Sequence record: NC_028999.1
DNA length: 64,000 nt
Reading direction: 5' to 3' (one strand)
Shown: positions 1 through 59,304 of the stretch, piece after piece
How the letters are laid out: each line of letters begins with the position of its first letter
Numbering within the stretch: position 1 is the first letter of the stretch
The notes under the pieces: model-generated
The model's input: the letters and a program-made list of their open reading frames with translations, nothing else
The model's database searches: none
Told to the model about the DNA's origin: nothing
Program-made: the position numbers and the translations under genes

Positions 1-806
1 CGAGCTGGCTGTTTGCGCGTCCAACCGAGTTGTTCGATCAGTTCGCTTACATCCATATTCGCATCAGACTCCAGACCCAGTGATTTCTGTTTCATTGCCT
101 GATCCTGCATACCCCAGAGAGTAGCAGGTGTAATGACAACTTCAGTTTCAGCAAAGCTTTCTAGTGCTGGTGACTTATACTTGTTAGCGATGTAAATACC
201 GCCTTCACCCACAAAGTCCCATGTAGAAATCTCACGGGTGTATTTGATGCCACGCATCATGTCATCTTGAGTAATCGAACGTACCGAACAATAGGTGTTG
301 ATACTCGGATTATCGAGCGACTCTTTGAAGATATGGCCGAATGGACCGTAAGGCTTGACTTCACCTACGACCATTTTGACCCGACGACCTTCCTCATTGA
401 TGGTATCAACAATGGACAGTGCACGGATGTGCGCACAGACGCGATCGTCATCGATTTTGCGGATACGTTGCAGATATTCCCGATCAGACAGTTGTCGTTT
501 AACAACACGACCTTCAACCAGGATTTCTTCCCAGGGTTCAGGATGCTTGAACTCCATGAACAGTACGCCCTTTTTCAGACGACGCATCAGCGGGCTGTCA
601 GGGTTGAACATGGAGACACCACTGGCTTCGTCATAAAACATACCAGCAGAGTTATGGGTACCATAGGCACCGAGAACGACTGTGTAATAACCGTCCGCAC
701 TTGGGGCAAGAATGCCCTTCTTGTCAGTACCGGCGAGCATCGTACAACCAATGCGGACTTGGTTGGCTACGTTGTTAGCGCGCTGCGGTTGCGTTCCGAA
801 TTGCAT
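1..806 (-). CDS. Prohead (head maturation) protease, phiKZ gp175/T4 gp21-like; 3' end runs off the window
   Basis: Manual translation from ATG at 806: MQFGTQPQ...GYYTVVLGAYGTHNSAG...EFKHPEP...RIRKIDDDRVCAHIRAL...EVKPYGPFG...NTYCSVRS...TWDFVGEGG...NKYKSPALES, open to the window edge. The motifs and the position upstream of the gp178-182 block fit. Confidence 0.88.
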   Translation of the reverse strand, partial: MQFGTQPQRANNVANQVRIGCTMLAGTDKKGILAPSADGYYTVVLGAYGTHNSAGMFYDEASGVSMFNPDSPLMRRLKKGVLFMEFKHPEPWEEILVEGRVVKRQLSDREYLQRIRKIDDDRVCAHIRALSIVDTINEEGRRVKMVVGEVKPYGPFGHIFKESLDNPSINTYCSVRSITQDDMMRGIKYTREISTWDFVGEGGIYIANKYKSPALESFAETEVVITPATLWGMQDQAMKQKSLGLESDANMDVSELIEQLGWTRKQPA

Positions 807-11972: not shown

Positions 11973-14900
11973 ATGGAGTTAACTATGGCCAGCAAAAAGA
12001 CCACGCTGCCAAAGCCCAAGGGGATCAATCCCCAAGGGTCTATTGTTCAGCTTGATCTTGACGACTTTGATGATCTGTTTGACGAAGACTTCGGATTGCC
12101 CAAAAAGAACAGTCCGTATACGGACTTCAAATCGGGCCTGAAGAGTGGATTCCTCGACAAATTCAAGACCACCACGGTTCTCAAGAACTTCCTACGTCAT
12201 GCAGCACCAGATGGATTCAACCGCTTGTTCGGCGTGTATGATGATCTTGTTACCAGTGCAAAAGACATCAAGGATTCTGTTGAGCGTACCAACGCTGCTG
12301 ACTTGGATTATCTGGGTCGTAAGGCAAAGTCTTATTTGCCGTACCTGGAAAAACACATTCCTAATACGCTTTACAAATCGATGGACGAAGGTCTGTCGCG
12401 TAAGCTTGAGCAATATAACTACGAAATGGAAGCTGGTCGTGACCAGATTGCCATCCGTAAACGGGCTCAGCAAGCTGCTGATGAAAATGAAATCAAGGCA
12501 GCACTCGACCAGAACACCCTGGTAAGTAAAGAGAACTTCCAGCGCTCCGAGCAAGGCATTATTAAACGTGCCGCCATGGAGAAGGCTGAAAGAAATATTA
12601 GGGATAAGATTTCCGCAGGTCGTTTCGATTTTACATCTCGTGCAATGAGCATGGCTGTAGACAGCCTGACTCGGATCTCTGCTTATCATGAGCAAGTAAG
12701 CTACGGGATGCAACGTAAGAGTCTGGAACTTCAGTTCCGTTCTTACTTGGGTATTCGTGATCTGGTTCGCCTGACAGAAGCCAACATGGAACTTCAGGAC
12801 CGTGCTTTCCAAGCATTGGTTCGTAACACTGGCATCCCGGAACATAAGAAAGCGGGCATGGGTAGTGGTTTACTTGGCTTTGGTGACGGTAGAGGTAATG
12901 CCAGTTTCGCTAAAGCCTTGGCAGGAGCCGCTTTCTCCACTCTTCCTGGCTTCATGGGGAACTGGGGTGGTCAGGTAGAAGATCGAGTTAAGAAGTCTCT
13001 CAGTGGTCGCTTGGCAGACATCGTTTCGGCTGCTCGTATGGGTGAGGGGGCTGGTTCCTTCTGGGATCAGCGTTACAATCTTGCCGGTATGATGGCTGGA
13101 GAATTTGGTTCTGATGTAATCAATGATCACATTGCCCCATGGCTGGGTTCTAAACTCCGACCTGGTGCTACTAGGTTAGCCCAGCGATTTGGTGGGCGCC
13201 ATAACCAACTGAACTATACGCTGGACAATATCCCAGCCTTCTTGCAAGAGTTTGTTAACAACTCGCAAAACCAGTACGGTTGGAAAGGCACCGTCCGTGA
13301 CATGATAGCTCCGTTCATCCCTCAGTTCTCCTTAAAGGACCGACTGGATAATGGAACCTATCAAACAATTGACCAGCAAACTGCTTTTAACCAGTTGACA
13401 CAACGGTCGATCACTGAAGTCATTCCTGGCTTACTGTCACGTGCAGTACAGGAACTGCGTATGATCCGTACTGGCCGTAATGATGTTGAGCGGGAAGTCT
13501 TTGACATCACTACTGGTAAATTTACGGTTGAGAAAACTGCTCAAGACAACGTCATGCATCGCGTTATTCCCAAGACGGCTATTCGTAACACGTCCGGAAT
13601 GATCAATGATGCACTCAATAACCTCGATCAAGAAGGTCAGTTGTCTCCAGCGGCACGTAAAGCTCTCAGCGAGAGGTTACTGCGTGATGCTTCAACTAAT
13701 CGTCGTTTTGACCCTAACGCATATATCCGTGCTGGGGGTTACGCTGATGGTCTGTCGCCGGATGTTACAAACGAACTCAGTCAGTTCTTCCGTGGGAAAT
13801 TCCAGTTCGACGACAAAGGTAAGATGACGGATACCGCGGCCAACCATCAACTCCGTGATGAGTGGTCTCGGGCTTTCTTGGACATTCGTAGTGTTTCACG
13901 TGATCCGATAAAAGAGATTCATCGCCTGGTGAACGCCGGTCATACCGAATCTCTGCGTATGCTCGGTATCATCGTTACTGAACAAGGTCAGGATAAGATC
14001 AACTACAACCGCGTTTGGGAAATCCTGCGTAGTGGTGTTTCGGATAACAATCCGTACGCTGGTGGTCCGATGCCTGATCCGGAACAAACGGGTACTCCTG
14101 GCGATAAGGGTTTTGTTGGTCCTGCCTATCCAGGTGCTGCGAAAGCTGGTGCATTAAATGCGATGGTGAGATTCCGTCGTAAATATGCCCCTGAAGAACA
14201 ACGCGCTCGTGACGAGTGGAACAAGTTTGCAAACAACATGCGTGGTCGTTACGGTTCCGCTGCTGACCAAATCAGGGAAGCTGGCGGTTTCGGAGACTGG
14301 ACCAATTCGATGTATGGTCGGTATAGCCCGAAAGTATCCGGGATGGCCACCGACGTAGTCGAACGAGCTAAAGCGTTCGCTGAGCGCCATAAGCCCGGTG
14401 CTGTTGATAGCATGATGAGTCGAGCCAAGGCTCTGGCTGGAAACTTCTTCCCCAACGGCCTTAGTGCTGGCGGTGTGTTGGATGCAGCCATGGGTTATGG
14501 GAAGAGCGCATATAGCCAGGCTATGTCGCAGATGCCTGGGATGAACGACGCCGCTGGCTCGTACGTCCAAGAGGGAATGAATAAGATCATGGACTTGTAT
14601 TCCAAGTTCGATCCGAAAGTACCCCTTATCAAAGGCACCGATTTCATCCAAGGTAAGCTCATTGACCTGAACACCAAGAAAGTCATTACGAAACCCAGTG
14701 ATATCACAGGTGCTGTGATTAACATGGCTGGTATGACTGTCCTCACAGCTCAAGAAGCTGCAAACGGTCTGTTCGATATTACGGGTCAGATGGTCATTAA
14801 GACATTGACCAATAATGGTGATATCTCTAATGCCGTATCTAAAAATACTGGTGGAATGGGTGCTGCTGCGAACGACGCAGAAAATCCTAACGAGGAGAAA

Positions 14901-17900
14901 GACCTAGAGGAACAAGACTGGTGTATCGACGGTGATCCGGATCCGATTATCACATCCCGTGGTCTGAAGAACGGTTCGTATTTCGATTCGGTAACAGGTG
15001 ACGTGGTTACGAAGCTGAACGAAGTTAAAGGAGATATTCTTGACAAGTTCGGTAACATCGTAGCGACAGCTAAAGAACTTGCAGTTGGTTTGATCTCTCG
15101 GAAAACGGGTAAGCGTTGGCGTTTGAAGAAAGGCCCGAAAGCCATTCTGAACATCATGGGTAAACTGGGTAAGTTTGGTAACATGACAGCTCACCAAGCT
15201 GCCTGGGGTATGATTAAGTTTGGTGCTAAGGCTGCCTTAGGTATTGCCTCAAAAGCATTTAACTTTGTGGTGGAAACACAGAACGCTTATCTGCCTGATT
15301 CTGATGACCCTGTATTCGAACGTCGTAAGTGTCATAATGGCGAATACTTCGATGAGAAGGGTAATGTGATCGAGAACTTCGCTGATGTCTATGGACAAAT
15401 CTACGATGCCAAAGGAGAACCCATTCTACCATTAGAACAGTTCAAGGATCTCATTAACTACGACGGCACTAAACATATCCTGGCTAAGAACAAAAAGCTT
15501 ATTCGACGTACATTAAATCGCGGCATTCGAGCTTTGCGAAAGAAATACGTCAACATGTCTAAGCGTTATTGGAAATGGTTGGGACGCACCAGCGCCAAAC
15601 TTGCCCCCAAGGTGGGTAGAAAACTCCTCGGCGGTTTTGCTAGCGCCGGTGGAGCTATCATGAACCGTCTTGTGGAGCGAGTTCCTTACGAAGACTTTGA
15701 AACGACGGATCAAGTATTGTTGGGTCAGATCCTGGAGACTCTACGGGGTACTCAGGAACAGCAAGTCCGCGAAGGTAGCTGGCAAGATCAAGCCGCTAAG
15801 AAAGCAGAAGCCGCAGAACGAGAAAGCCTCTTTGGAAGCTTAGGTGGACGCAAAGGCGAAGGTGATCAAGAGAAAGCCCAGAACATCTTCATGAGAGGTC
15901 TAACCAAGGGACTGCAAAGTGTCTTTAGTAAGATCACTGGTAAAGATGCTGATGAAGATTCCGGTATCATGGATCTCATCTTGGGTGGTGGTAAGAAAGG
16001 CGGTGGTAAAGGTCGATTGGGTGGGATGCTGGCTCGTGCAGCTCCATACGCTGCGGCCGGTGCTGCTACAGCGGTAGGTACAGCCATTACCGCGAAGAAG
16101 TTCAATGATCAAGGATTTGACGGCAAGGAAAGCGGCTTACTCACCGCACTGTCGGCAACAGCTCCGGGCAAGTTAATGACGGACTGGATCATTGCTCCAA
16201 CCATGTTGAAATTCAAGAACGTTGACAAATTGACGAAGCCGTTCATTCTGCTTCGGATGGCGCAGTACGGTATTACTGACCTTGATCAACAGAGTAAGAT
16301 CTTTACTCTTGAACAAGAGTTCGAGAAATCCGCAACACGTGGTGAACGTTCTGACATCAGCATGGAAGCCGTAGGTGCGAAACGGGTATTTGAGATTCTG
16401 GATATCAAACCAGATGACAAAGCGCGTATCAAAGCGATGGCTGATTGGTTACAACTTCGTTTCCGACCGATCTTCAACGCCTATCTGAACGCTCTGCATT
16501 CAGTAGACAAAGATAATATCAATGTCACTGAGATGGACGACAAGCTCCCCAATGAGTTAAAGGGTGCTGTACTGGAAAAAGTGAAGTTCCCGATGCTTGG
16601 GGATACGCCGTACCAGTACCGGATGAGTCCGTTCGATCCAGAAGGCAAGCTGGAAGATACAACTGCGGATATCACGGAACGCTTTGAGAAGTACACCAAG
16701 ATGTTTGCAGGGGTTAAGGCCCTAGCTTTAGCGAATAAGAATAAAGTCGCTAGAGACAAGGCCATGGCAGGCGAAGCTGCCAGTACTGTTCAGGATGCAG
16801 CTAAAAAGGCTGTAGACACGGCAGTTAAAGGTAGCCCGCTGAGTATGGTTGCTCCCGGTGTTCCTTCACCATTGGCTCCAGTAGATCCGAAATCTAAGAT
16901 GCAACTCAAGACAGCCTTGGGTGGCACTGCGGTAATCACTGGTGTAGGTAAGCTAGGTAGTTCTCTGACTGGCCTACAGGCAATCCGTATGCGGGCTTAT
17001 GGTCTGCAAACGATGGCCTACTCTGACGTACAAGCGTTGCTGTCGTTGGAGGCCAGGTTTGTAGAAGGTCTGAAGATCAGTAACGGCGAGGCAAATTACA
17101 CAGGGGATACGGAAGATCTGATTCAGACTACCGCCCCACTGTTTGGTAAGGACCCTTCCGATGGATCGAAAGATAGAGTTGGGTACGTAAACTGGTTACT
17201 GTATCGCTTTGCTCCGGCATTCCGCGCATACATGCTAGCCTCTTCCCAGTTTGCCCCCAGCGCCAACCTAAATGGATTGGAATCCAAGCTCAAGCCTGGT
17301 GATAAAGTAACTGTTGCAAACGCTGTATTGGGTGCTGCTGATGGTGGGAATTCAGTCTGGAAACAAGCCAGTATCTTCGAGATCAAAGGAGACCCTGAAG
17401 ATCTTAAGAAATTGGCCGAAGCCGACTTGGAACACTTAAAGCAAGAAGCAGAGAAAGACATTGCTGCTTCCCCAACTCAATCAGCGGGTTCTCAGGCTGC
17501 TGGTAAGGCAGCTGCTGATGCCGGTGGTTCATTTGCCGACAAAGCAGTAAGCAGTATTAAGAATGCCTGGGAGAAGACGAAAGACACCGCTGCAACTGCT
17601 TGGCAAAATACCAAAAATGCAGTGAGTGCTGGCGTTGACAACGTCATGGACATGAAAGATGCGGCAACGTATCGCATGGGTCTGGCGGGCGAAGTCAAAG
17701 CAACAGGTAATACCTACGGGTCTCTAGCCCAAGGTAATGGTGGTCAGTGGGAACAAATCCCCATGCCTAAGCAAAACAAATCCGCAGCAGCTGCTCGTGA
17801 GACGCTGTCGGTTGTAGCGCAAATGGTGGGGGTACCTGTTGAACTGTTGATGATCTTCTGTGCTATCGAGTCCAGCTTCGACTGGAATGCTCGGGCAGGT

Positions 17901-18944
17901 ACGTCTAATGCATCTGGTTGGTTCCAGTTCATTAACAGTACTTGGGACGGCATGATCAAGAAGTACTCGGCTAAGTATGGTTTACCCGCCGATACGCCAC
18001 AGCGGAGTCTCCGGATGGATCCTCGGATCAACGCCCTGATGGGTGCCGAGTTCGTCAAAGAGAACTTCACGATCCTGCAAAATGCGTTGGGTCGTGCTCC
18101 GACTGACGTTGATCTGTACGTTGCACACTTCATGGGGCCATACGGCGCTAAGAAGTTCCTGATGAAAGATCAGAACTCCATCGGTGCCGCTGTATTCCCG
18201 AAAGAAGCCGCTGCTAACCGGACAATCTTCTACAAGAACAAAGGTACTGGTCCTGCCCGTACCCTTGGTGAAATCTATCAGACCTTCGAATCCTTGGTCG
18301 CTCGTTTCCGTAAGATGGCGGGTGGTACCGGTTCGGACGTTAAGATGCCACAACAGCCTGGTGAAGAGAAATCTTCTCAGGAACTTGCTGAAGAACAATC
18401 CAAGCAGGCTGCAAAATCTGGGAGTGCAGCAATTAGTGCATGGGATGTGGATACCTCTGACAATGCCAGTGATGCTGCCGTCGCAAGATCGGAAGCCTAT
18501 CTGGCAAATCAGGGTAAACCACAAGTACCGGTTTTACCGGGTATTACCCCCATGTCCACTGCGCCTGTACCGGCTGGCACTACATCGCCAGATGGTACGC
18601 AGACTGGTGCAACGCCATCTGCGGATTCAGGCGTGAGTGTGGCTGCTGCTGGTACGAATGCACGTGTGGAAGCTGCACAACAGCAAAACACCATTCGCCA
18701 GCATGAGATTCGTCAATCGCAACAAGTTCAACAGAAAGCAATTGATGTGCAAGGTGAGCAACTCGCAATCCTCATCCAGATTCGAGATCATCTCGCTATT
18801 CTGGTTGCCGCTGCACAATCAAAAGGTTCTATTGAACAGCAACAGGTACAGACCGGCAGTGCAGGAGGCGGTAATAATATGACCTCTACTCAACGCACCA
18901 GCCGGCCGGCCCTTGATCGGCCATCACCGCTGAAGCTGCAATAA
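11973..18944 (+). CDS. Giant tail-associated lytic transglycosylase (phiKZ gp181-like)
   Basis: 2323 aa with an SLT motif near the C-terminus (FCAIESSF...ASGWFQFINSTW...LYVAHFMG); follows the gp180-like gene; true start may be ATG 11985. Confidence 0.88.
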   Translation: MELTMASKKTTLPKPKGINPQGSIVQLDLDDFDDLFDEDFGLPKKNSPYTDFKSGLKSGFLDKFKTTTVLKNFLRHAAPDGFNRLFGVYDDLVTSAKDIKDSVERTNAADLDYLGRKAKSYLPYLEKHIPNTLYKSMDEGLSRKLEQYNYEMEAGRDQIAIRKRAQQAADENEIKAALDQNTLVSKENFQRSEQGIIKRAAMEKAERNIRDKISAGRFDFTSRAMSMAVDSLTRISAYHEQVSYGMQRKSLELQFRSYLGIRDLVRLTEANMELQDRAFQALVRNTGIPEHKKAGMGSGLLGFGDGRGNASFAKALAGAAFSTLPGFMGNWGGQVEDRVKKSLSGRLADIVSAARMGEGAGSFWDQRYNLAGMMAGEFGSDVINDHIAPWLGSKLRPGATRLAQRFGGRHNQLNYTLDNIPAFLQEFVNNSQNQYGWKGTVRDMIAPFIPQFSLKDRLDNGTYQTIDQQTAFNQLTQRSITEVIPGLLSRAVQELRMIRTGRNDVEREVFDITTGKFTVEKTAQDNVMHRVIPKTAIRNTSGMINDALNNLDQEGQLSPAARKALSERLLRDASTNRRFDPNAYIRAGGYADGLSPDVTNELSQFFRGKFQFDDKGKMTDTAANHQLRDEWSRAFLDIRSVSRDPIKEIHRLVNAGHTESLRMLGIIVTEQGQDKINYNRVWEILRSGVSDNNPYAGGPMPDPEQTGTPGDKGFVGPAYPGAAKAGALNAMVRFRRKYAPEEQRARDEWNKFANNMRGRYGSAADQIREAGGFGDWTNSMYGRYSPKVSGMATDVVERAKAFAERHKPGAVDSMMSRAKALAGNFFPNGLSAGGVLDAAMGYGKSAYSQAMSQMPGMNDAAGSYVQEGMNKIMDLYSKFDPKVPLIKGTDFIQGKLIDLNTKKVITKPSDITGAVINMAGMTVLTAQEAANGLFDITGQMVIKTLTNNGDISNAVSKNTGGMGAAANDAENPNEEKDLEEQDWCIDGDPDPIITSRGLKNGSYFDSVTGDVVTKLNEVKGDILDKFGNIVATAKELAVGLISRKTGKRWRLKKGPKAILNIMGKLGKFGNMTAHQAAWGMIKFGAKAALGIASKAFNFVVETQNAYLPDSDDPVFERRKCHNGEYFDEKGNVIENFADVYGQIYDAKGEPILPLEQFKDLINYDGTKHILAKNKKLIRRTLNRGIRALRKKYVNMSKRYWKWLGRTSAKLAPKVGRKLLGGFASAGGAIMNRLVERVPYEDFETTDQVLLGQILETLRGTQEQQVREGSWQDQAAKKAEAAERESLFGSLGGRKGEGDQEKAQNIFMRGLTKGLQSVFSKITGKDADEDSGIMDLILGGGKKGGGKGRLGGMLARAAPYAAAGAATAVGTAITAKKFNDQGFDGKESGLLTALSATAPGKLMTDWIIAPTMLKFKNVDKLTKPFILLRMAQYGITDLDQQSKIFTLEQEFEKSATRGERSDISMEAVGAKRVFEILDIKPDDKARIKAMADWLQLRFRPIFNAYLNALHSVDKDNINVTEMDDKLPNELKGAVLEKVKFPMLGDTPYQYRMSPFDPEGKLEDTTADITERFEKYTKMFAGVKALALANKNKVARDKAMAGEAASTVQDAAKKAVDTAVKGSPLSMVAPGVPSPLAPVDPKSKMQLKTALGGTAVITGVGKLGSSLTGLQAIRMRAYGLQTMAYSDVQALLSLEARFVEGLKISNGEANYTGDTEDLIQTTAPLFGKDPSDGSKDRVGYVNWLLYRFAPAFRAYMLASSQFAPSANLNGLESKLKPGDKVTVANAVLGAADGGNSVWKQASIFEIKGDPEDLKKLAEADLEHLKQEAEKDIAASPTQSAGSQAAGKAAADAGGSFADKAVSSIKNAWEKTKDTAATAWQNTKNAVSAGVDNVMDMKDAATYRMGLAGEVKATGNTYGSLAQGNGGQWEQIPMPKQNKSAAAARETLSVVAQMVGVPVELLMIFCAIESSFDWNARAGTSNASGWFQFINSTWDGMIKKYSAKYGLPADTPQRSLRMDPRINALMGAEFVKENFTILQNALGRAPTDVDLYVAHFMGPYGAKKFLMKDQNSIGAAVFPKEAAANRTIFYKNKGTGPARTLGEIYQTFESLVARFRKMAGGTGSDVKMPQQPGEEKSSQELAEEQSKQAAKSGSAAISAWDVDTSDNASDAAVARSEAYLANQGKPQVPVLPGITPMSTAPVPAGTTSPDGTQTGATPSADSGVSVAAAGTNARVEAAQQQNTIRQHEIRQSQQVQQKAIDVQGEQLAILIQIRDHLAILVAAAQSKGSIEQQQVQTGSAGGGNNMTSTQRTSRPALDRPSPLKLQ

Positions 18945-18948
18945 CTTT

Positions 18949-18974
18949 GAGGCCACTCCTTCGGGGGTGGCCTT
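18949..18974 (+). terminator. Intrinsic terminator after gp181-like gene
   Basis: gaggccactcc-ttcg-ggggtggcctt followed by a T-rich run. Confidence 0.7.
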
Positions 18975-18995
18975 ATTTCGTCAAAGGAAACCAAC

Positions 18996-20972
18996 ATGGC
19001 AACCGATATAAAACCAATTTGGTTACGACAAGCCTTTCTGTTGCCCGTATCCGACAACAAGAAACACTTCGGCTCTGGCACTCGCCGCCGCTATGCTAAC
19101 TCAGCAGCATTTAAATTCACCAACACCACATTAGGTGGTAGCTTCGCTATTAACATGTTACCCCAATACACCAGGTATGCAGACATTCGTCAACCTGGTC
19201 GGGGTCGAACATACGAACAACGTTTCGATGGCATGGGGCGGTATTATTCCGAAGCTCATGATGACACCAAGCAAGAACTACACATGTCGTTCGGTGTGCC
19301 ACGTTTTAGTAGTTGGTCTGGATTCTTCACGAACTTCTACGACCGCTCAGCTGCTGCATTAGCCAACACCGGTGTAGCTGGTGGAGCTTGGTATAACTTG
19401 GGTAACGTTGGCGGGTTATTGGTTACATTACCACTGCAACCGTTTATCCTGGGTATTACAGGCGTTTCTAAAGTTATCTCGTTCCTGTCCAAGACTCAGC
19501 CCTCTAAATGGTTCTATTTCAAACCGACCATGCACGCATATTGGTCAGCGGTTAATACCTTGGCAAACGAATTTGCTATCGGCCTTGGTATCACCCCATG
19601 GGTTTGGGATAACACAGCTAAACCACTGACTGATCCAGGTCAATCGGTTTCGGAAGAAGACGTTAAAGGAATGCACAAAATCTTCCCAGGGTTATTCCGT
19701 GAAGATGGTGGTGTAGACATTATGGCTCTTGCTGGTCGTACACAGCGAATGTCTGACCAAGCACAGCAAAACTTTAAGGCCATCGCTGAGAAAGCCGAAT
19801 CCATTGAAGCACTGCAAGCGGCGGTGGATGAAGAATACTCCAAGATGCCTGACGACCCAGGCGCTGGTGCAGATGCTCGTAAATACTTCCTTGATTATCT
19901 AAAAGCAGATAACCGCGCAGCAGACGACTCTGGTATCGTAGATACGGAATCGTTTAGTACGTGGAAAGACCTCAAAGGAGTTTACGACTTCGTGGTCGGT
20001 GCACAACACGACGGCATGCAATTTGTTACTCTGCGTGCTGATTATAATGGGGAGGTTTCCGAATCTTTCAGCAACTCCACACGCGATGTTGGTGTCGCTC
20101 AAACCCTGAATACTAAGGTGGGGGAAGGGCGCGCCGCTTCATTTGACTTCATGGGTGGTAACATCACTGAAGGGGTTGGAGCAGCTGTGGACATGGTCAA
20201 GAGTTTTGTTTCTGGGGCACTGGATACTATCAACATGAATGGTCTGGCTACGTTAGCGGGCGCTGCATTTGTTGATGTACCGGAATACTGGGACAGTGCA
20301 ATGGCATCTTTGCCGTCAGCACAATACACGATTCCCTTGATCAGTCCGTATGGTAATGTTATCTCCCGTTTCATGAATATCTACATTCCGCTGGCTATGA
20401 TTCTCCCGATGGGCTTGCCCCGTTCGGCTGGTCGTTCAGCGTACACAGCTCCGTTCATTTGTCAGATCTACCACAAAGGTCGCGTACAAAGACAACTGGG
20501 CATCGTAGATTCTATACAGATTCGTCGTGGTGTAGGTAATGTCGGCTGGAACGCCGAGCATCAGATGCTCGGTTGTGAAGTTACCATCAGTGTCAAAGAC
20601 CTCTCTAAGCTCATGCACATCCCAATCAAAGGTGGCTTCGCTAGTCCGTCATGGCTAGGTACAGTTACTCGGGGTGCGGTAGCAGAGCTTGCTGACCTGG
20701 CTGGTGGTGAGGGCGCACAAGCTGCTGCCATTGCCTTAACCAACGGCGCGGTCTGGGATGAACAGAGTTTGTTCAACGACTACGTTGCAACACTGTGTTC
20801 TCAATCCTGGGCTGATCTGTATTACGCTGGAAAGCGTTTAAACCTCAATATCACTCGTGTAACGCAAGATTTCAAATCTTGGAAGTCCCCATCCAACTTC
20901 ATGAGTTGGGTACTGGACGGCGAGGTTGCACGGACGGTCTCTGCATTCATGCAGACAACTGATCGCTTCTAA
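18996..20972 (+). CDS. Virion structural (tail/baseplate) protein, gp182-like
   Basis: 658 aa ORF with RBS aagga, directly after the gp181-like gene as in phiKZ. Confidence 0.7.
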
Positions 20973-20982
20973 AGGAAAAACT

Positions 20983-21351
20983 ATGTCTCTTCTGAAAACC
21001 ATCGGTCTTAAACTCATTGGCGCCAAAGGCATTGCCGAAATTGAAAGCGCTGCCATTGCTTCGGCTGCAAGTGGCATCATCTCCAAAGCGGTAGATGAGG
21101 CAACCCCACGCATCACCCGTGAAGCTATTGCCGCTCAAACCTACACCGAACTGCGTGTACGCCTCCTTAGTAAACTTCTGGGTGGCGAAGACAATGTAAT
21201 TAGCTGGGCTGATAAAGTAGCCGAATCTAAGCTCCAAAACAAAAATCCGGTGGTGCTGCGTAGCAAGCTAGTGAAAGAACTCAAGGAAATCACAGGCGAT
21301 AGCACTCGTGCTGGCGCTACTGCTGATCTGCTCCTTGATTCCCTGAAGTAA
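20983..21351 (+). CDS. Hypothetical protein
   Basis: aaagga RBS then ATG 20983 (MSLLKTIG...). Confidence 0.65.
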   Translation: MSLLKTIGLKLIGAKGIAEIESAAIASAASGIISKAVDEATPRITREAIAAQTYTELRVRLLSKLLGGEDNVISWADKVAESKLQNKNPVVLRSKLVKELKEITGDSTRAGATADLLLDSLK

Positions 21352-21362
21352 GGAGAGACCGA

Positions 21363-21848
21363 GTGCTTCATTTCATCACCCCAATGATTCAAGCGTGTCG
21401 AGCTGTATTTGACAAAGAAGCTCTGAAGAAGAGTATCACGAACAAATTGACGAAAGAAGACGTCAAGCAATTGGCGCTCCAACGTCTGTCTCGTGAAGAG
21501 ACTGCACAGCTGGCTGCGAAAGCACACGGTCACGCTAGTTTCGAACAACTGATCGAGCAGTGGAACACCAGTTTATTGGGGCGCCCTGAAGCACTTGAAC
21601 ATCAAGCTCGTAGTGTGATCCTGCGTAATTGTCCTGATGCTCGTGCTTCGGACTCCTTTGAGCAATTTACTCTCCGGGCATTGGTTAGCGATACACTACT
21701 CGCTGAGCAAACAATGAAGAACATGCTCAAGAAGAAATCCTATGTACTGACAGCAGTCAAATATCGTCTGCCAGGCATTACCAAATCCGAAGCAAACCTG
21801 ATGGTTGAACTCCTGGTTCAACTGTCCAAAACTTACAGGGGCAATTAA
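21363..21848 (+). CDS. Hypothetical protein
   Basis: 161 aa ORF, aaggag RBS, stop/start overlap with the next gene. Confidence 0.65.
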   Translation: MLHFITPMIQACRAVFDKEALKKSITNKLTKEDVKQLALQRLSREETAQLAAKAHGHASFEQLIEQWNTSLLGRPEALEHQARSVILRNCPDARASDSFEQFTLRALVSDTLLAEQTMKNMLKKKSYVLTAVKYRLPGITKSEANLMVELLVQLSKTYRGN

Positions 21849-22417
21849 TGAAAGGCATGAATTGGGCACTGAGTCTTGAGGACCAAGAAGGTCAGGCTCA
21901 AGAAGTAGACGTGAATAACGTCGAATCGGAAACCGAGGTAAAGGATCTCGATCAGGGCAATCTGGATGTAGACAACGCCAACAAGGAATCTCAGCCTGAT
22001 ACGGTCCATGCGGATACTGAGGGCGATGTCTCCAACGAAGAGGCTACCTACGCTGCTGCAACGGGTGCATCTACTATCGAAGCTTTCGCTCCCGATAAAT
22101 ACGGTTGTCCCAAGCGTTTCGTCCTGTCAGGCTTTGATGCTTCCAGCAACCCGGCAGCTGATATCAATGACAACAAGCTCCAGTGCGTACTGCTGATGCA
22201 AAACGGTACGCTACCGGAAGTAGGTAAGAATGGTATCACTGCTGAAGATCTTCTGCGTGTTGTTGAAGAGCTTTTCGTGGGCTATCAATCAGGTCCGTTT
22301 GCGTGTGAAGAGAACGAGTCTGTTCTGTTCCATGTTCGTGCCGCTCAAGCGAAGATTCAGGCTCGTCTGTATCGTCGTCGTGAGGAAGGTACTGAAGGGA
22401 CCTACCAGGGTCACTAA
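21848..22417 (+). CDS. tad1: Tad1-like anti-defence sponge domain with an acidic N-terminal extension
   Basis: C-terminal ~105 aa matches the Tad1 family pattern as I recall it: QNGTLPEVGKNGITAEDLL..V......Q.GPF.C.EN......A...I..R...R...G.EGT. Confidence 0.8.
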   Translation: MKGMNWALSLEDQEGQAQEVDVNNVESETEVKDLDQGNLDVDNANKESQPDTVHADTEGDVSNEEATYAAATGASTIEAFAPDKYGCPKRFVLSGFDASSNPAADINDNKLQCVLLMQNGTLPEVGKNGITAEDLLRVVEELFVGYQSGPFACEENESVLFHVRAAQAKIQARLYRRREEGTEGTYQGH

Positions 22418-22420
22418 CGA

Positions 22421-22451
22421 CATAAATGCCCAGCTCAGGCTGGGCTTTATG
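22421..22451 (+). terminator. Intrinsic terminator closing the structural/Tad1 unit
   Basis: cataaatgcccagc-tcag-gctgggctttatg. Confidence 0.75.
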
Positions 22452-22481
22452 CCATTGTAAAAAGTTTCAAATCTATATTAC
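22452..22481 (+). promoter_or_regulatory. phiKZ-type early promoter
   Basis: ccattgtaaaaagtttcaaatcTATATTAC (motif at 22474-22481). Confidence 0.75.
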
Positions 22482-22512: not shown

Positions 22513-23046
22513 ATGGCACTGTCTGATTGCTATCAATGTTGGGAAACACCCTGTAAATGTGGTCATGACTACATGGATTGGACAGAGAAAGATCTGAAGG
22601 GGCAAATCGCAATGCTTCAAGGTGTTCTCCATTCCAAGCAAACCAAAGAAGCCAGCAAACTAGCTGGTGAGGAAATGGTGCGCTACGAGATCCGTGATCT
22701 CATTCCTGTCCGGGTGAAGTACTATCACGGCACCTCTGTAAAGGTACAGGCTCTGGATGCACCGACATACTCGATGTTTAAACACCGTCGTCTACAGGAA
22801 ACCTCTGGGCATTTCCAGTTCGATCCAGCTGATGGTAAATGCATATCTGGTTCCGGGGATAAACCCTGGGCTTTCTCGGTGTCGATCAAGATCGGCGAAG
22901 GACCTGACGATTGGACGTATTCGCTGAGTGCATTCAACACCAACGAATTCGCCGCGCCGCATTACGACGCTAATATTCGGGTAGAATTCATCATTCGGGA
23001 TCGTGTCGTGTACTTACCCAAATGTACCTTGCTGGAGCCGGAATGA
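22513..23046 (+). CDS. Hypothetical protein with an N-terminal Cys cluster (CYQCWETPCKCG)
   Basis: 177 aa ORF with gagg RBS, first gene after the early promoter. Confidence 0.7.
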   Translation: MALSDCYQCWETPCKCGHDYMDWTEKDLKGQIAMLQGVLHSKQTKEASKLAGEEMVRYEIRDLIPVRVKYYHGTSVKVQALDAPTYSMFKHRRLQETSGHFQFDPADGKCISGSGDKPWAFSVSIKIGEGPDDWTYSLSAFNTNEFAAPHYDANIRVEFIIRDRVVYLPKCTLLEPE

Positions 23047-23405
23047 ATTCACAATTGATCATCTACATCGTGAATGGGGCATATACCCGAGAGCAGATTG
23101 AAGCGCACAGCAAAGTCCCTTTCGTGGAAAACCTATCCGAAGCGGCTGATCAACCAGTGGTGTTCACTCCATATACCCGAAGTAAGGTAATTAGGTACAG
23201 ACAAGAGAATAGAATCAATCTGTTTCTCACCCCGGACTTTGATAAGTCGATTTCGATGCTGCACGAGAACCATGGGCGTTACTTCCAGATAAGTCTCTTG
23301 GGTATCAAGGACTATAACGACAATTGCAATATGGTTCCACTGGGAATCGAACATCTGAATATGTTTGATGAAACATACGAACGGAAGATGAAGGAAAAAC
23401 GATGA
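23043..23405 (+). CDS. Hypothetical protein, tandem paralog 1 of 3
   Basis: IYIVNGAYTREQIEAHSKVPFVE...PVVFTPY. Confidence 0.7.
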   Translation: MNSQLIIYIVNGAYTREQIEAHSKVPFVENLSEAADQPVVFTPYTRSKVIRYRQENRINLFLTPDFDKSISMLHENHGRYFQISLLGIKDYNDNCNMVPLGIEHLNMFDETYERKMKEKR

Positions 23406-23737
23406 CACTCAAAGCGATTGTCTACATCCACAACAATGCTTTCACTCCGGAGCAGATTGCTGAGTTCAGCAAAGTTCCGTACATGGAAGTCATTGACCTG
23501 AACACCACCCACCCCATGGTGTTCACTCCGTACAGCTCCGACCTGATCATCCAATACAAGAACACGATCCCGTACCAGATGATTGTTTCGGTGGACCCAA
23601 CCCCCGAGCAAGAAAAAGAGCTGCGGCAGCATACCCTGAAAGATGGGATTTACAGCCTGAGCTACGTCACGGGTGAGATCAATCAGGACCAGTTCCTGAT
23701 GTGGGACGCTGAATACGACAACATGGCGGCGGTGTAA
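23402..23737 (+). CDS. Hypothetical protein, tandem paralog 2 of 3
   Basis: VYIHNNAFTPEQIAEFSKVPYME...PMVFTPY. Confidence 0.7.
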   Translation: MTLKAIVYIHNNAFTPEQIAEFSKVPYMEVIDLNTTHPMVFTPYSSDLIIQYKNTIPYQMIVSVDPTPEQEKELRQHTLKDGIYSLSYVTGEINQDQFLMWDAEYDNMAAV

Positions 23738-23739
23738 GT

Positions 23740-24096
23740 ATGAAACTCAAGGCAGTGCTGTATGTGGTCAATGACGCATTGACCAAAGAAGAGATCGTTG
23801 AGCACACGAAGATCCCATTCGTTGAGAACGTAGATCTGGAAACGGAACATCCGATCGTAGCTACGCCGTATAATGCGGAGAAAGTCAAATCTCACCAAAG
23901 CGTCGTACAGTATCAGTGCTTCATTGCCCACGAGTATGAAACCACTGAGAAACTGCTGAACGAGGAGCTGGGTGAACGTCCGCGTAATACCACTTATATC
24001 ACCTATCATGGGTCGGATGTACCTGGTAAACGTCTTAGCCCAGGTCACCTGGATGCCTGGAACTTTGAGTACGATCGTCTTCTGAATGAGAGTTGA
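23740..24096 (+). CDS. Hypothetical protein, tandem paralog 3 of 3
   Basis: LYVVNDALTKEEIVEHTKIPFVE...PIVATPY. Confidence 0.7.
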   Translation: MKLKAVLYVVNDALTKEEIVEHTKIPFVENVDLETEHPIVATPYNAEKVKSHQSVVQYQCFIAHEYETTEKLLNEELGERPRNTTYITYHGSDVPGKRLSPGHLDAWNFEYDRLLNES

Positions 24097-40515: not shown

Positions 40516-40552
40516 CCATTAAATTTTATTTCAAATCTATATTACGTCTTTG
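40516..40552 (+). promoter_or_regulatory. phiKZ-type early promoter (copy A of an identical 37-bp element)
   Basis: ccattaaattttatttcaaatcTATATTACgtctttg, identical to 59268-59304. Confidence 0.8.
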
Positions 40553-59267: not shown

Positions 59268-59304
59268 CCATTAAATTTTATTTCAAATCTATATTACGTC
59301 TTTG
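59268..59304 (+). promoter_or_regulatory. phiKZ-type early promoter (copy B of the identical 37-bp element)
   Basis: Identical to 40516-40552; TATATTAC at 59290-59297. Confidence 0.8.

Follow-up and report, generated by a model that had tools for sequence, protein, structure and literature searches.

Gene 217 of PhiPA3 and its surroundings

A 64,000-nt stretch of the genome of the giant Pseudomonas phage PhiPA3 (NC_028999.1), referred to here as the window, carries on the + strand at 21848–22417 a gene whose product joins an acidic N-terminal leader to a domain of the Tad1 type, a class of sponge proteins for immune signalling molecules. This gene, designated 217, was present both in the list of open reading frames (ORFs) and in the annotation; it starts with an ATG at 21848 and stops at 22415–22417, such that its product gp217 (AEH03640.1) is 189 aa long. 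Annotation was taken from HQ630627.1, to which the window is 100% identical (window coordinate = record coordinate - 186000), and in this record gp217 is a hypothetical protein similar to 201phi2-1 gp280 and phiKZ gp184.

Gene 217 is the last of five genes lying on one strand. The four annotated genes upstream of it (213–216, 11985–21848, +) are closely spaced, the successive gaps from gene 213 to gene 217 being 51, 10, 32 and -1 nt, the last of these a one-base overlap between the gene 216 stop and the gene 217 start. The annotation likens gp213 to the tail lysozyme protein of phiKZ (gp181-like) and gp214 to gp182. The products of genes 215 and 216 (20983–21848, +) had no match in Pfam, NCBIfam or PHROGs, and their slot is occupied by a single small gene (183) in phiKZ and by two (278 and 279) in 201phi2-1. 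The order gp181-like gene, gp182-like gene, small ORFs, gp217-type gene, gp186-like gene, thymidylate kinase gene is common to PhiPA3, phiKZ and 201phi2-1, and gp217 is the syntenic ortholog of phiKZ gp184 and 201phi2-1 gp280. The intervals between genes 213 and 217 contain no copy of the 17-mer described below and no intergenic hairpin, and genes 213–216 are probably co-transcribed with gene 217.

Directly 3' of the gene 217 stop codon, RNA folding disclosed a stem-loop at 22421–22451 (+), with a folding energy of -20.2 kcal/mol (z = -4.41; 0 of 200 shuffles fold equally well), a core GC stem at 22428–22445 and a short U-run, only UUUAU, and this is the likely transcription terminator of the gene. 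A sigma-70 promoter scan was uninformative for PhiPA3 and flagged the gene 217 hairpin on the minus strand only, since the U-run on the plus strand is one T short. Downstream of gene 217 and upstream of gp218, a 17-base promoter-like motif is found at 22465–22481 (+), and includes an 8-mer at 22474–22481. Identical 17-mers are present at 40529–40545 and 59281–59297, giving three copies in the window, all intergenic and on the + strand only, located 32–39 nt ahead of the starts of gp218, gp239 and gp270 and each preceded, some 15 nt before the motif, by a conserved CCATT. The 17-mer probably represents one promoter class of PhiPA3, presumably the early class of phiKZ-like phages, and the 8-mer presumably resembles the phiKZ early-promoter consensus. 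The copy at 22465–22481 would then serve gp218 onward.

Gene 205 (1–806, minus strand, its last 28 bases lying beyond the window edge) is annotated as similar to phiKZ gp175 and 201phi2-1 gp268; phiKZ gp175 is the head maturation protease (PMC11297242, PMC12676376), and gp205 is its homolog. The earlier note on this DNA had described gene 217 as the last of a run following gp181/gp182-like genes, closed by a terminator at 22421–22451 and lying upstream of a promoter element at 22474, with a gp175-type protease encoded in the window, and the arrangement given above agrees with it on each point.

The Tad1 domain and its ligand pocket

Residues 66–189 of gp217 (22043–22414, +) were assigned to the Tad1 fold by AlphaFold2, Foldseek, phmmer and profile comparison, and include a conserved C-terminal G-T-E-G-T. 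These analyses were run with the gp217 protein itself, independently of the letter patterns by which the earlier note had recognised Tad1. In the AlphaFold2 model, built on an alignment of 32 relatives, residues 1–65 are disordered (predicted local distance difference test score, pLDDT, < 50), while residues 66–186 form a confident domain with strands at 66–69, 76–82, 88–94 and 112–117 and long helices at 132–148 and 154–180. The 20 best Foldseek matches of this model in the PDB are all Tad1 entries (E 2.5e-6 to 1.3e-4, probability 1.0, target template modelling (TM) score 0.67–0.75), and the first match after them has an E value of 0.5. Against predicted viral structures (BFVD), Foldseek returned proteins named 'Acb2/Tad1 hairpin domain'. 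In a phmmer search of PDB sequences the best match to gp217 was 8Y6V chain I, which is phiKZ gp184 (E 5.3e-36), followed by six Tad1 entries (E 2.3e-5 to 3e-5). The profile of the 32 relatives, which covers residues 5–122 of the 125 in the Tad1 chain, matched CmTad1 at E 1.8e-13 and CbTad1 at E 1.2e-10, with Tad1 structures ranging to 1.4e-10, and matched phiKZ gp184 (8y6v_I) at E 6.5e-68. In addition, PF24729 (Acb2/Tad1 hairpin) is the precomputed Pfam family of gp217 and of nearly all of its relatives.

Several results count on the other side. A local Pfam scan of whole gp217 and of residues 66–189 returned no family even at an E value of 10, and an NCBIfam scan returned nothing for gp217 or its neighbours. 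Moreover, the AlphaFold2 model is that of a monomer, so that the pocket at the dimer interface and the oligomeric state, in Tad1 a trimer of dimers, are outside it. The local PF24729 model is weak and recognised no more than 2 of 49 clear Tad1-domain proteins. All families obtained from PHROGs for gp217 were of 'unknown function'. Taken with the phmmer, profile, model and Foldseek results, and with the pocket residues described below, membership of gp217 in the Tad1 family appears almost certain. The Tad1-like part recognised in the earlier note is therefore retained, with its start moved from residue 84 to near residue 66.

The clostridial prophage proteins CbTad1 (7UAV, 7UAW, 8SMD) and CmTad1 (8KBB–8KBD) share with gp217 the fold, at the TM scores given above, the residues of the pocket for glycocyclic ADP-ribose (gcADPR) and cyclic dinucleotides, and a conserved C-terminal lid region, and they are equal in size to gp217 residues 65–189. 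They differ in having no N-terminal leader and are only about 20–25% identical to gp217. Acb2 (anti-CBASS 2, PF13876; CBASS, cyclic oligonucleotide-based anti-phage signalling system) is likewise a cyclic-nucleotide sponge and has the PF24729 helical hairpin in common with Tad1, though it belongs to a different overall family; PF13876 had no match in gp217 in the local Pfam scan.

The stretch encoding the pocket lies at 22283–22378 (+) and was read from a gapless alignment to CbTad1, in which the PDB chain index equals the published residue number plus 1; all six residues checked in this way fell on the correct letters. CbTad1 holds gcADPR and 2',3'-cGAMP (2',3'-cyclic GMP-AMP) in a pocket made up of F82, N92, R109 and R113, and mutation of these residues abolishes binding of both, while R90 and T97 (R88 and T95 in CmTad1) belong to the cyclic-trinucleotide site and to the hexamer contact (bioRxiv 10.1101/2023.11.15.567273, the 2023 preprint of Li et al., in which phiKZ is not mentioned). 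The four pocket residues correspond to Y146, N156, R173 and R177 of gp217. Among the 32 relatives, Tyr or Phe occupies position 146 in 32/32, and N156, R173 and R177 are each present in 32/32. CbTad1 R90 corresponds to E154, a column with Glu in 26 relatives, Gln in three, and Pro, Ser and Ala in one each, and never Arg; T97 corresponds to F161, a variable column in which Thr occurs once in 32. The clostridial proteins thus keep the Arg and Thr of the trinucleotide and hexamer site, where the gp217 type has Glu and a variable residue.

From these columns it is inferred that the gcADPR/dinucleotide pocket is intact in the gp217 branch, and the trinucleotide site appears to have been lost in the whole jumbo-phage Tad1 branch, phiKZ gp184 included. 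On the basis of pocket conservation and of the ortholog, gp217 very likely sequesters gcADPR, and perhaps dinucleotides. Binding of the trinucleotide signals of CBASS is doubtful because the Arg and Thr positions are replaced; this loss speaks against trinucleotide binding and not against Tad1 membership, since the site is a feature of the clostridial proteins. A published observation agrees with it: a phiKZ mutant in which tad1 is still present succumbs to a CBASS with NucC and cyclic tri-adenylate (cAAA), and supplying Acb2, a cAAA sponge, rescues it. The earlier note had named both gcADPR and CBASS cyclic oligonucleotides as ligands of Tad1 proteins; the residues for gcADPR and dinucleotides are kept, and those for trinucleotides are not.

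The acidic leader and probable loading into the head

The leader, residues 1–64 (21848–22039, +), was delimited by pLDDT and composition and is a candidate capsid-targeting or propeptide region. Residues 1–80 contain 25% Asp and Glu and 3.75% Lys and Arg, compared with 13.8% and 11%, respectively, in residues 81–189, so that the acidic N-terminal part of about 80 aa had been correctly noticed from the sequence. Although disordered in the prediction, the leader comes close to the fold in conservation: among 27 PhiPA3-type relatives the mean pairwise identity is 55% over residues 1–65 and 62% over the folded domain. Residues W6, E11, D33, D35, D60 and E64 are nearly invariant, and the first dozen residues are common to gp217 and phiKZ gp184. 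The corresponding start, W-x-x-[SGA]-[LIVM]-E, a possible shared capsid-targeting signal, was found in no other ORF of the window.

Three S/A-x-E motifs, at residues 9–11 (SLE), 17–19 (AQE) and 62–64 (SNE), had been proposed as protease-site candidates, and all are at these positions. The first, S9-L10-E11 (21872–21880, +), is S/G-x-E in 30 of the 32 relatives, including the phiKZ type, where it is S11-L12-E13; with L8 it reads L-S-L-E and fits the motif LSxE, for which Fossati et al. reported enrichment at the cleavage sites of phiKZ (PMC10449902). At the second, S62-N63-E64 (22031–22039, +), 29 of the 32 relatives have S/A/G-x-E and 31 have the Glu. A putative cut after E64 would give residues 65–189, a chain of 125 aa, and stand-alone Tad1 chains are 123–138 aa long. 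Conservation singles out these two sites as candidates and does not extend to AQE 17–19, kept in only 9 of 32.

The wedged N-terminus and injected C-terminus of phiKZ gp184 reportedly go back to Li et al. (Nature, 2024). As summarised by Chan et al. in citing that work, the N-terminus of gp184 is wedged in the capsid and its C-terminus is freed by the head protease and injected (bioRxiv 10.1101/2025.11.23.690004). In the same preprint 'Tad1, gp184' is the only previously known phiKZ anti-defence gene, and is non-essential. The protein is located on the inner capsid surface, is processed by gp175 and is mostly unresolved in the map, apart from an N-terminal piece wedged between gp86 and a hexamer centre; it is listed among the proteins of the vertex-binding complex and 'mainly consists of beta-strands' (PMC11297242). 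In the work of Fossati et al., gp184 emerged among the interactors of the inner body, and its C-terminally FLAG-tagged form was validated as injected into translation-blocked cells (PMC10449902). According to a review of 2026, phiKZ injects Tad1, which blocks both CBASS and Thoeris (PMC13282480). AntiDefenseFinder detects gp184, and PHIKZ184 is annotated as 'structural protein'.

The Tad1 domains of the two proteins are 54% identical (gp217 residues 77–189 against gp184 residues 117–230, E 9e-43, BLASTP). They have the same pocket residues, a Glu in place of the trinucleotide Arg, a W-x-x-S-L-E start followed by an acidic leader, and a gp175-type protease encoded nearby. They differ in length (230 aa for gp184), in a helix at about 51–61 of the phiKZ type that is absent from gp217, and in that packaging, cleavage, injection and anti-defence activity, predicted for gp217, have been published in the case of gp184. 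A model of the phiKZ type is confident, beyond the Tad1 domain, only over residues 69–102, which form a small beta module. The modelled chain 8y6v_I consists of 34 residues and matches this model at 97% identity with a TM score of 0.83 (Foldseek), and it very probably is that module; the match itself comes without coordinates, and the assignment fits the published remark on beta-strands. Residues ~74–105 of the phiKZ type face gaps in the gp217 alignments. Other relatives without the module, 189–207 aa in length, are those of the PA1C/PS119XW/BRkr group, 201phi2-1, Viktualia and Phabio.

A number of these observations weigh against head loading of gp217. It lacks the 34-residue beta module, very probably the only part of gp184 seen in the capsid map (PDB 8Y6V), which weakens the transfer of packaging from gp184 to gp217, and BLASTP gave nothing significant between gp217 and the phiKZ type outside the Tad1 domain. 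The equivalence of E64 to a G-x-E of the phiKZ type depends on the alignment and is only a possibility: alignment A3, where the Glu is invariant, pairs it with G106-H107-E108, and alignment A1 with E94. As the earlier note had cautioned, motifs of this kind may arise by chance, and residues 1–80 contain three S/A/G-x-E where shuffles give 2.7 +/- 1.3, so that only the conservation of the motifs counts as evidence. PhiPA3 gp217 was detected once by proximity labelling in infected cells and its green fluorescent protein (GFP) fusion formed 'cytoplasmic puncta', results that would neither show nor exclude incorporation into the head. Late transcription of the gene is suggested by gene order only.

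The missing module, the puncta and labelling, and the chance-level motif count would all suit a Tad1 sponge that is made during infection, acts solely in the cytoplasm and is not loaded into the head, its leader serving solubility, localisation or regulation. Set against this are the position of gene 217 as the last in a tail/baseplate run and without its own promoter motif, the conservation of two protease-type motifs and of the N-terminal dozen residues across both subfamilies, and the injection of the ortholog gp184. A further argument comes from 201phi2-1 gp280, whose host is Pseudomonas chlororaphis and which is slightly longer (199 aa). It shares with gp217 the module-less architecture, the gene neighbourhood and 50% identity over the full length, and it is marked 'identified using mass spectrometry' in its genome record, which together with the shared architecture restores much of the transfer of packaging to gp217; no study of gp280 function was found. 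A purely cytoplasmic role is accordingly considered unlikely. Orthology, synteny, the conserved motifs and the 201phi2-1 note make it probable that gp217 is loaded into heads, processed near E64 and injected.

The leader might instead stay in the head and have a function there, for example attached to the shell, to proteins of the inner body or, as a counter-charge, to the DNA, with Tad1 perhaps tethered until ejection. The N-terminal piece of gp184 that stays wedged between gp86 and the hexamer centre (PMC11297242), the capsid-wedged N-termini described by Chan et al. (bioRxiv 10.1101/2025.11.23.690004), the inner-body interaction of gp184 (PMC10449902) and the high conservation of the leader are in line with such a role; the ordered beta module is, however, absent from gp217, and residues 1–65 are predicted to be disordered, so that retention is regarded as quite improbable. 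In the earlier note the leader had been likened to a head propeptide on a sponge that may be made late, packaged, matured and injected. Packaging and injection are published for the ortholog gp184 and may be extended to gp217 by orthology. The throw-away propeptide does not describe the phiKZ protein, in which part of the N-terminal region stays bound to the capsid, and gp217 lacks that part.

The listing of gp184 among the vertex-binding proteins (PMC11297242) and its annotation as a structural protein could also indicate that the role of gp217 is mainly structural, as a minor capsid protein stabilising vertices, with a Tad1-like fold that has ceased to bind signals. This is most improbable given that the pocket residues are Y/F or invariant in the 32 relatives, that what is seen of gp184 in the phiKZ capsid lies outside its Tad1 domain, that orf184 is dispensable in phiKZ (bioRxiv 10.1101/2025.11.23.690004), and that no gp184 homolog was seen in the vertex complex of the related phage Goslar.

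As a whole, the data are likely best explained by gp217 being a Tad1 sponge with a leader, packaged in the head, cleaved and injected, the steps from transcription to ejection being modelled on the orthologs. Gene 217 would be transcribed together with the tail/baseplate genes 213–216, and the leader would bring the protein into the assembling head. There gp205, the gp175-type protease, would cut after E64, and perhaps after E11, leaving the 125-residue Tad1 free inside the capsid. Without the beta module, gp217 may leave no ordered piece on the capsid wall. The freed Tad1 would be ejected with the DNA and would thus be in the cell before phage gene expression and before the phage nucleus. Residues ~65–189 would then hold gcADPR, the Thoeris signal, in the Y146/N156/R173/R177 pocket, probably with some cyclic dinucleotides as well, keeping the signal from the host effector; cyclic-trinucleotide binding, for which clostridial Tad1 has the Arg and Thr replaced here, would probably be missing.

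An analogy is offered by internal protein I (IPI*) of phage T4, a small anti-defence protein carried in the head, to which it is targeted by a short N-terminal signal; it is trimmed by the head protease after a Glu, enters the cell together with the injected DNA, and is at work before phage genes are expressed. IPI* binds and blocks a restriction nuclease and does not sequester a small molecule, and no sequence or fold relationship between it and gp217 is known.

Tad1 domains in other phages and behind other N-terminal modules

Matches were found in 98 phage records, of which about 66 are Pseudomonas phages, including about 50 phiKZ-like ones. Against 1.84 billion representatives the gp217-family profile retrieved 4,337 Tad1-domain proteins, 1,568 of them at E 1e-10. 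N-terminal extensions were surveyed in 180 proteins, namely the 150 best of the 4,337 representatives plus the family members already collected. In 49 of these 180 the Tad1 domain is C-terminal, or nearly so, and follows an extension of more than 60 aa (66–465 aa; alignment A4), and 44 of the 49 end within four residues of the domain.

In six of the 49 (P0107, P0103, P0085, P0129, P0123 and P0061) the N-terminal segment matches PF25620, the phiKZ major capsid protein, with E values down to 1e-24 and over family positions ~142–280. This segment aligns to residues ~250–332 of phiKZ gp120 and to other jumbo-phage major capsid proteins. One complete ORF for such a fusion, of 376 aa, was located in a 254-kb viral contig (L003, 10001–11131, +), and the whole fusion was found in no isolated phage of the collection searched. 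The capsid-fragment fusions suggest, at the level of sequence, that there are several tethering routes. It is tentatively proposed, at somewhat less than an even chance, that Tad1 sponges were tethered to jumbo-phage capsids several times independently by different N-terminal modules; these would be an acidic leader with protease motifs (PhiPA3), the leader plus the 34-residue beta module (phiKZ), and, in six or more metagenomic clusters, a piece of the major capsid protein itself.

Two other extended proteins were observed in the survey material. One of the 49 has a domain of the Acb2 family (PF13876) in front of Tad1 and would be a double sponge. Protein P0028 (300 aa, on a 1.4-kb contig) is of the gp217 type with some 100 extra residues inserted after the conserved S-x-E position and ahead of the Tad1 domain, so that extra modules can sit at this junction.

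Downstream of the 22465–22481 motif lies gp218, a protein of 177 aa with a Cys-rich N-terminus and no family, followed by genes 219, 220 and 221 (23022–24096, +), three tandem paralogs of 127, 111 and 118 aa that all belong to PHROG 26097, of unknown function. gp219 was also detected by proximity labelling and forms cytoplasmic puncta.

The combination of sponge and packaging has already been published for phiKZ gp184, and gp217 is not new in kind; what it adds, the module-less architecture and the lost trinucleotide site, is modest. The phage nucleus shields DNA from nucleases and not from small-molecule signalling, and a sponge delivered with the DNA closes this gap at time zero, a point likewise already made for gp184. 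The Tad1 trait is conserved across the phiKZ-like Pseudomonas phages in two architectures, one of them without the capsid-wall module, and the jumbo-phage branch appears to have kept the gcADPR/dinucleotide pocket and not the trinucleotide site. Genes annotated as hypothetical proteins in PhiPA3, PA1C, BRkr, 201phi2-1, Phabio and their relatives can be named as Tad1-family, probably head-packaged. If head loading holds for PhiPA3, its type of protein would demonstrate that loading can do without the wall-binding module. The fusions of capsid fragments to Tad1 are a lead worth pursuing and, if they do enter capsids, pre-made signal sponges would be a general strategy of large phages and not a peculiarity of phiKZ.

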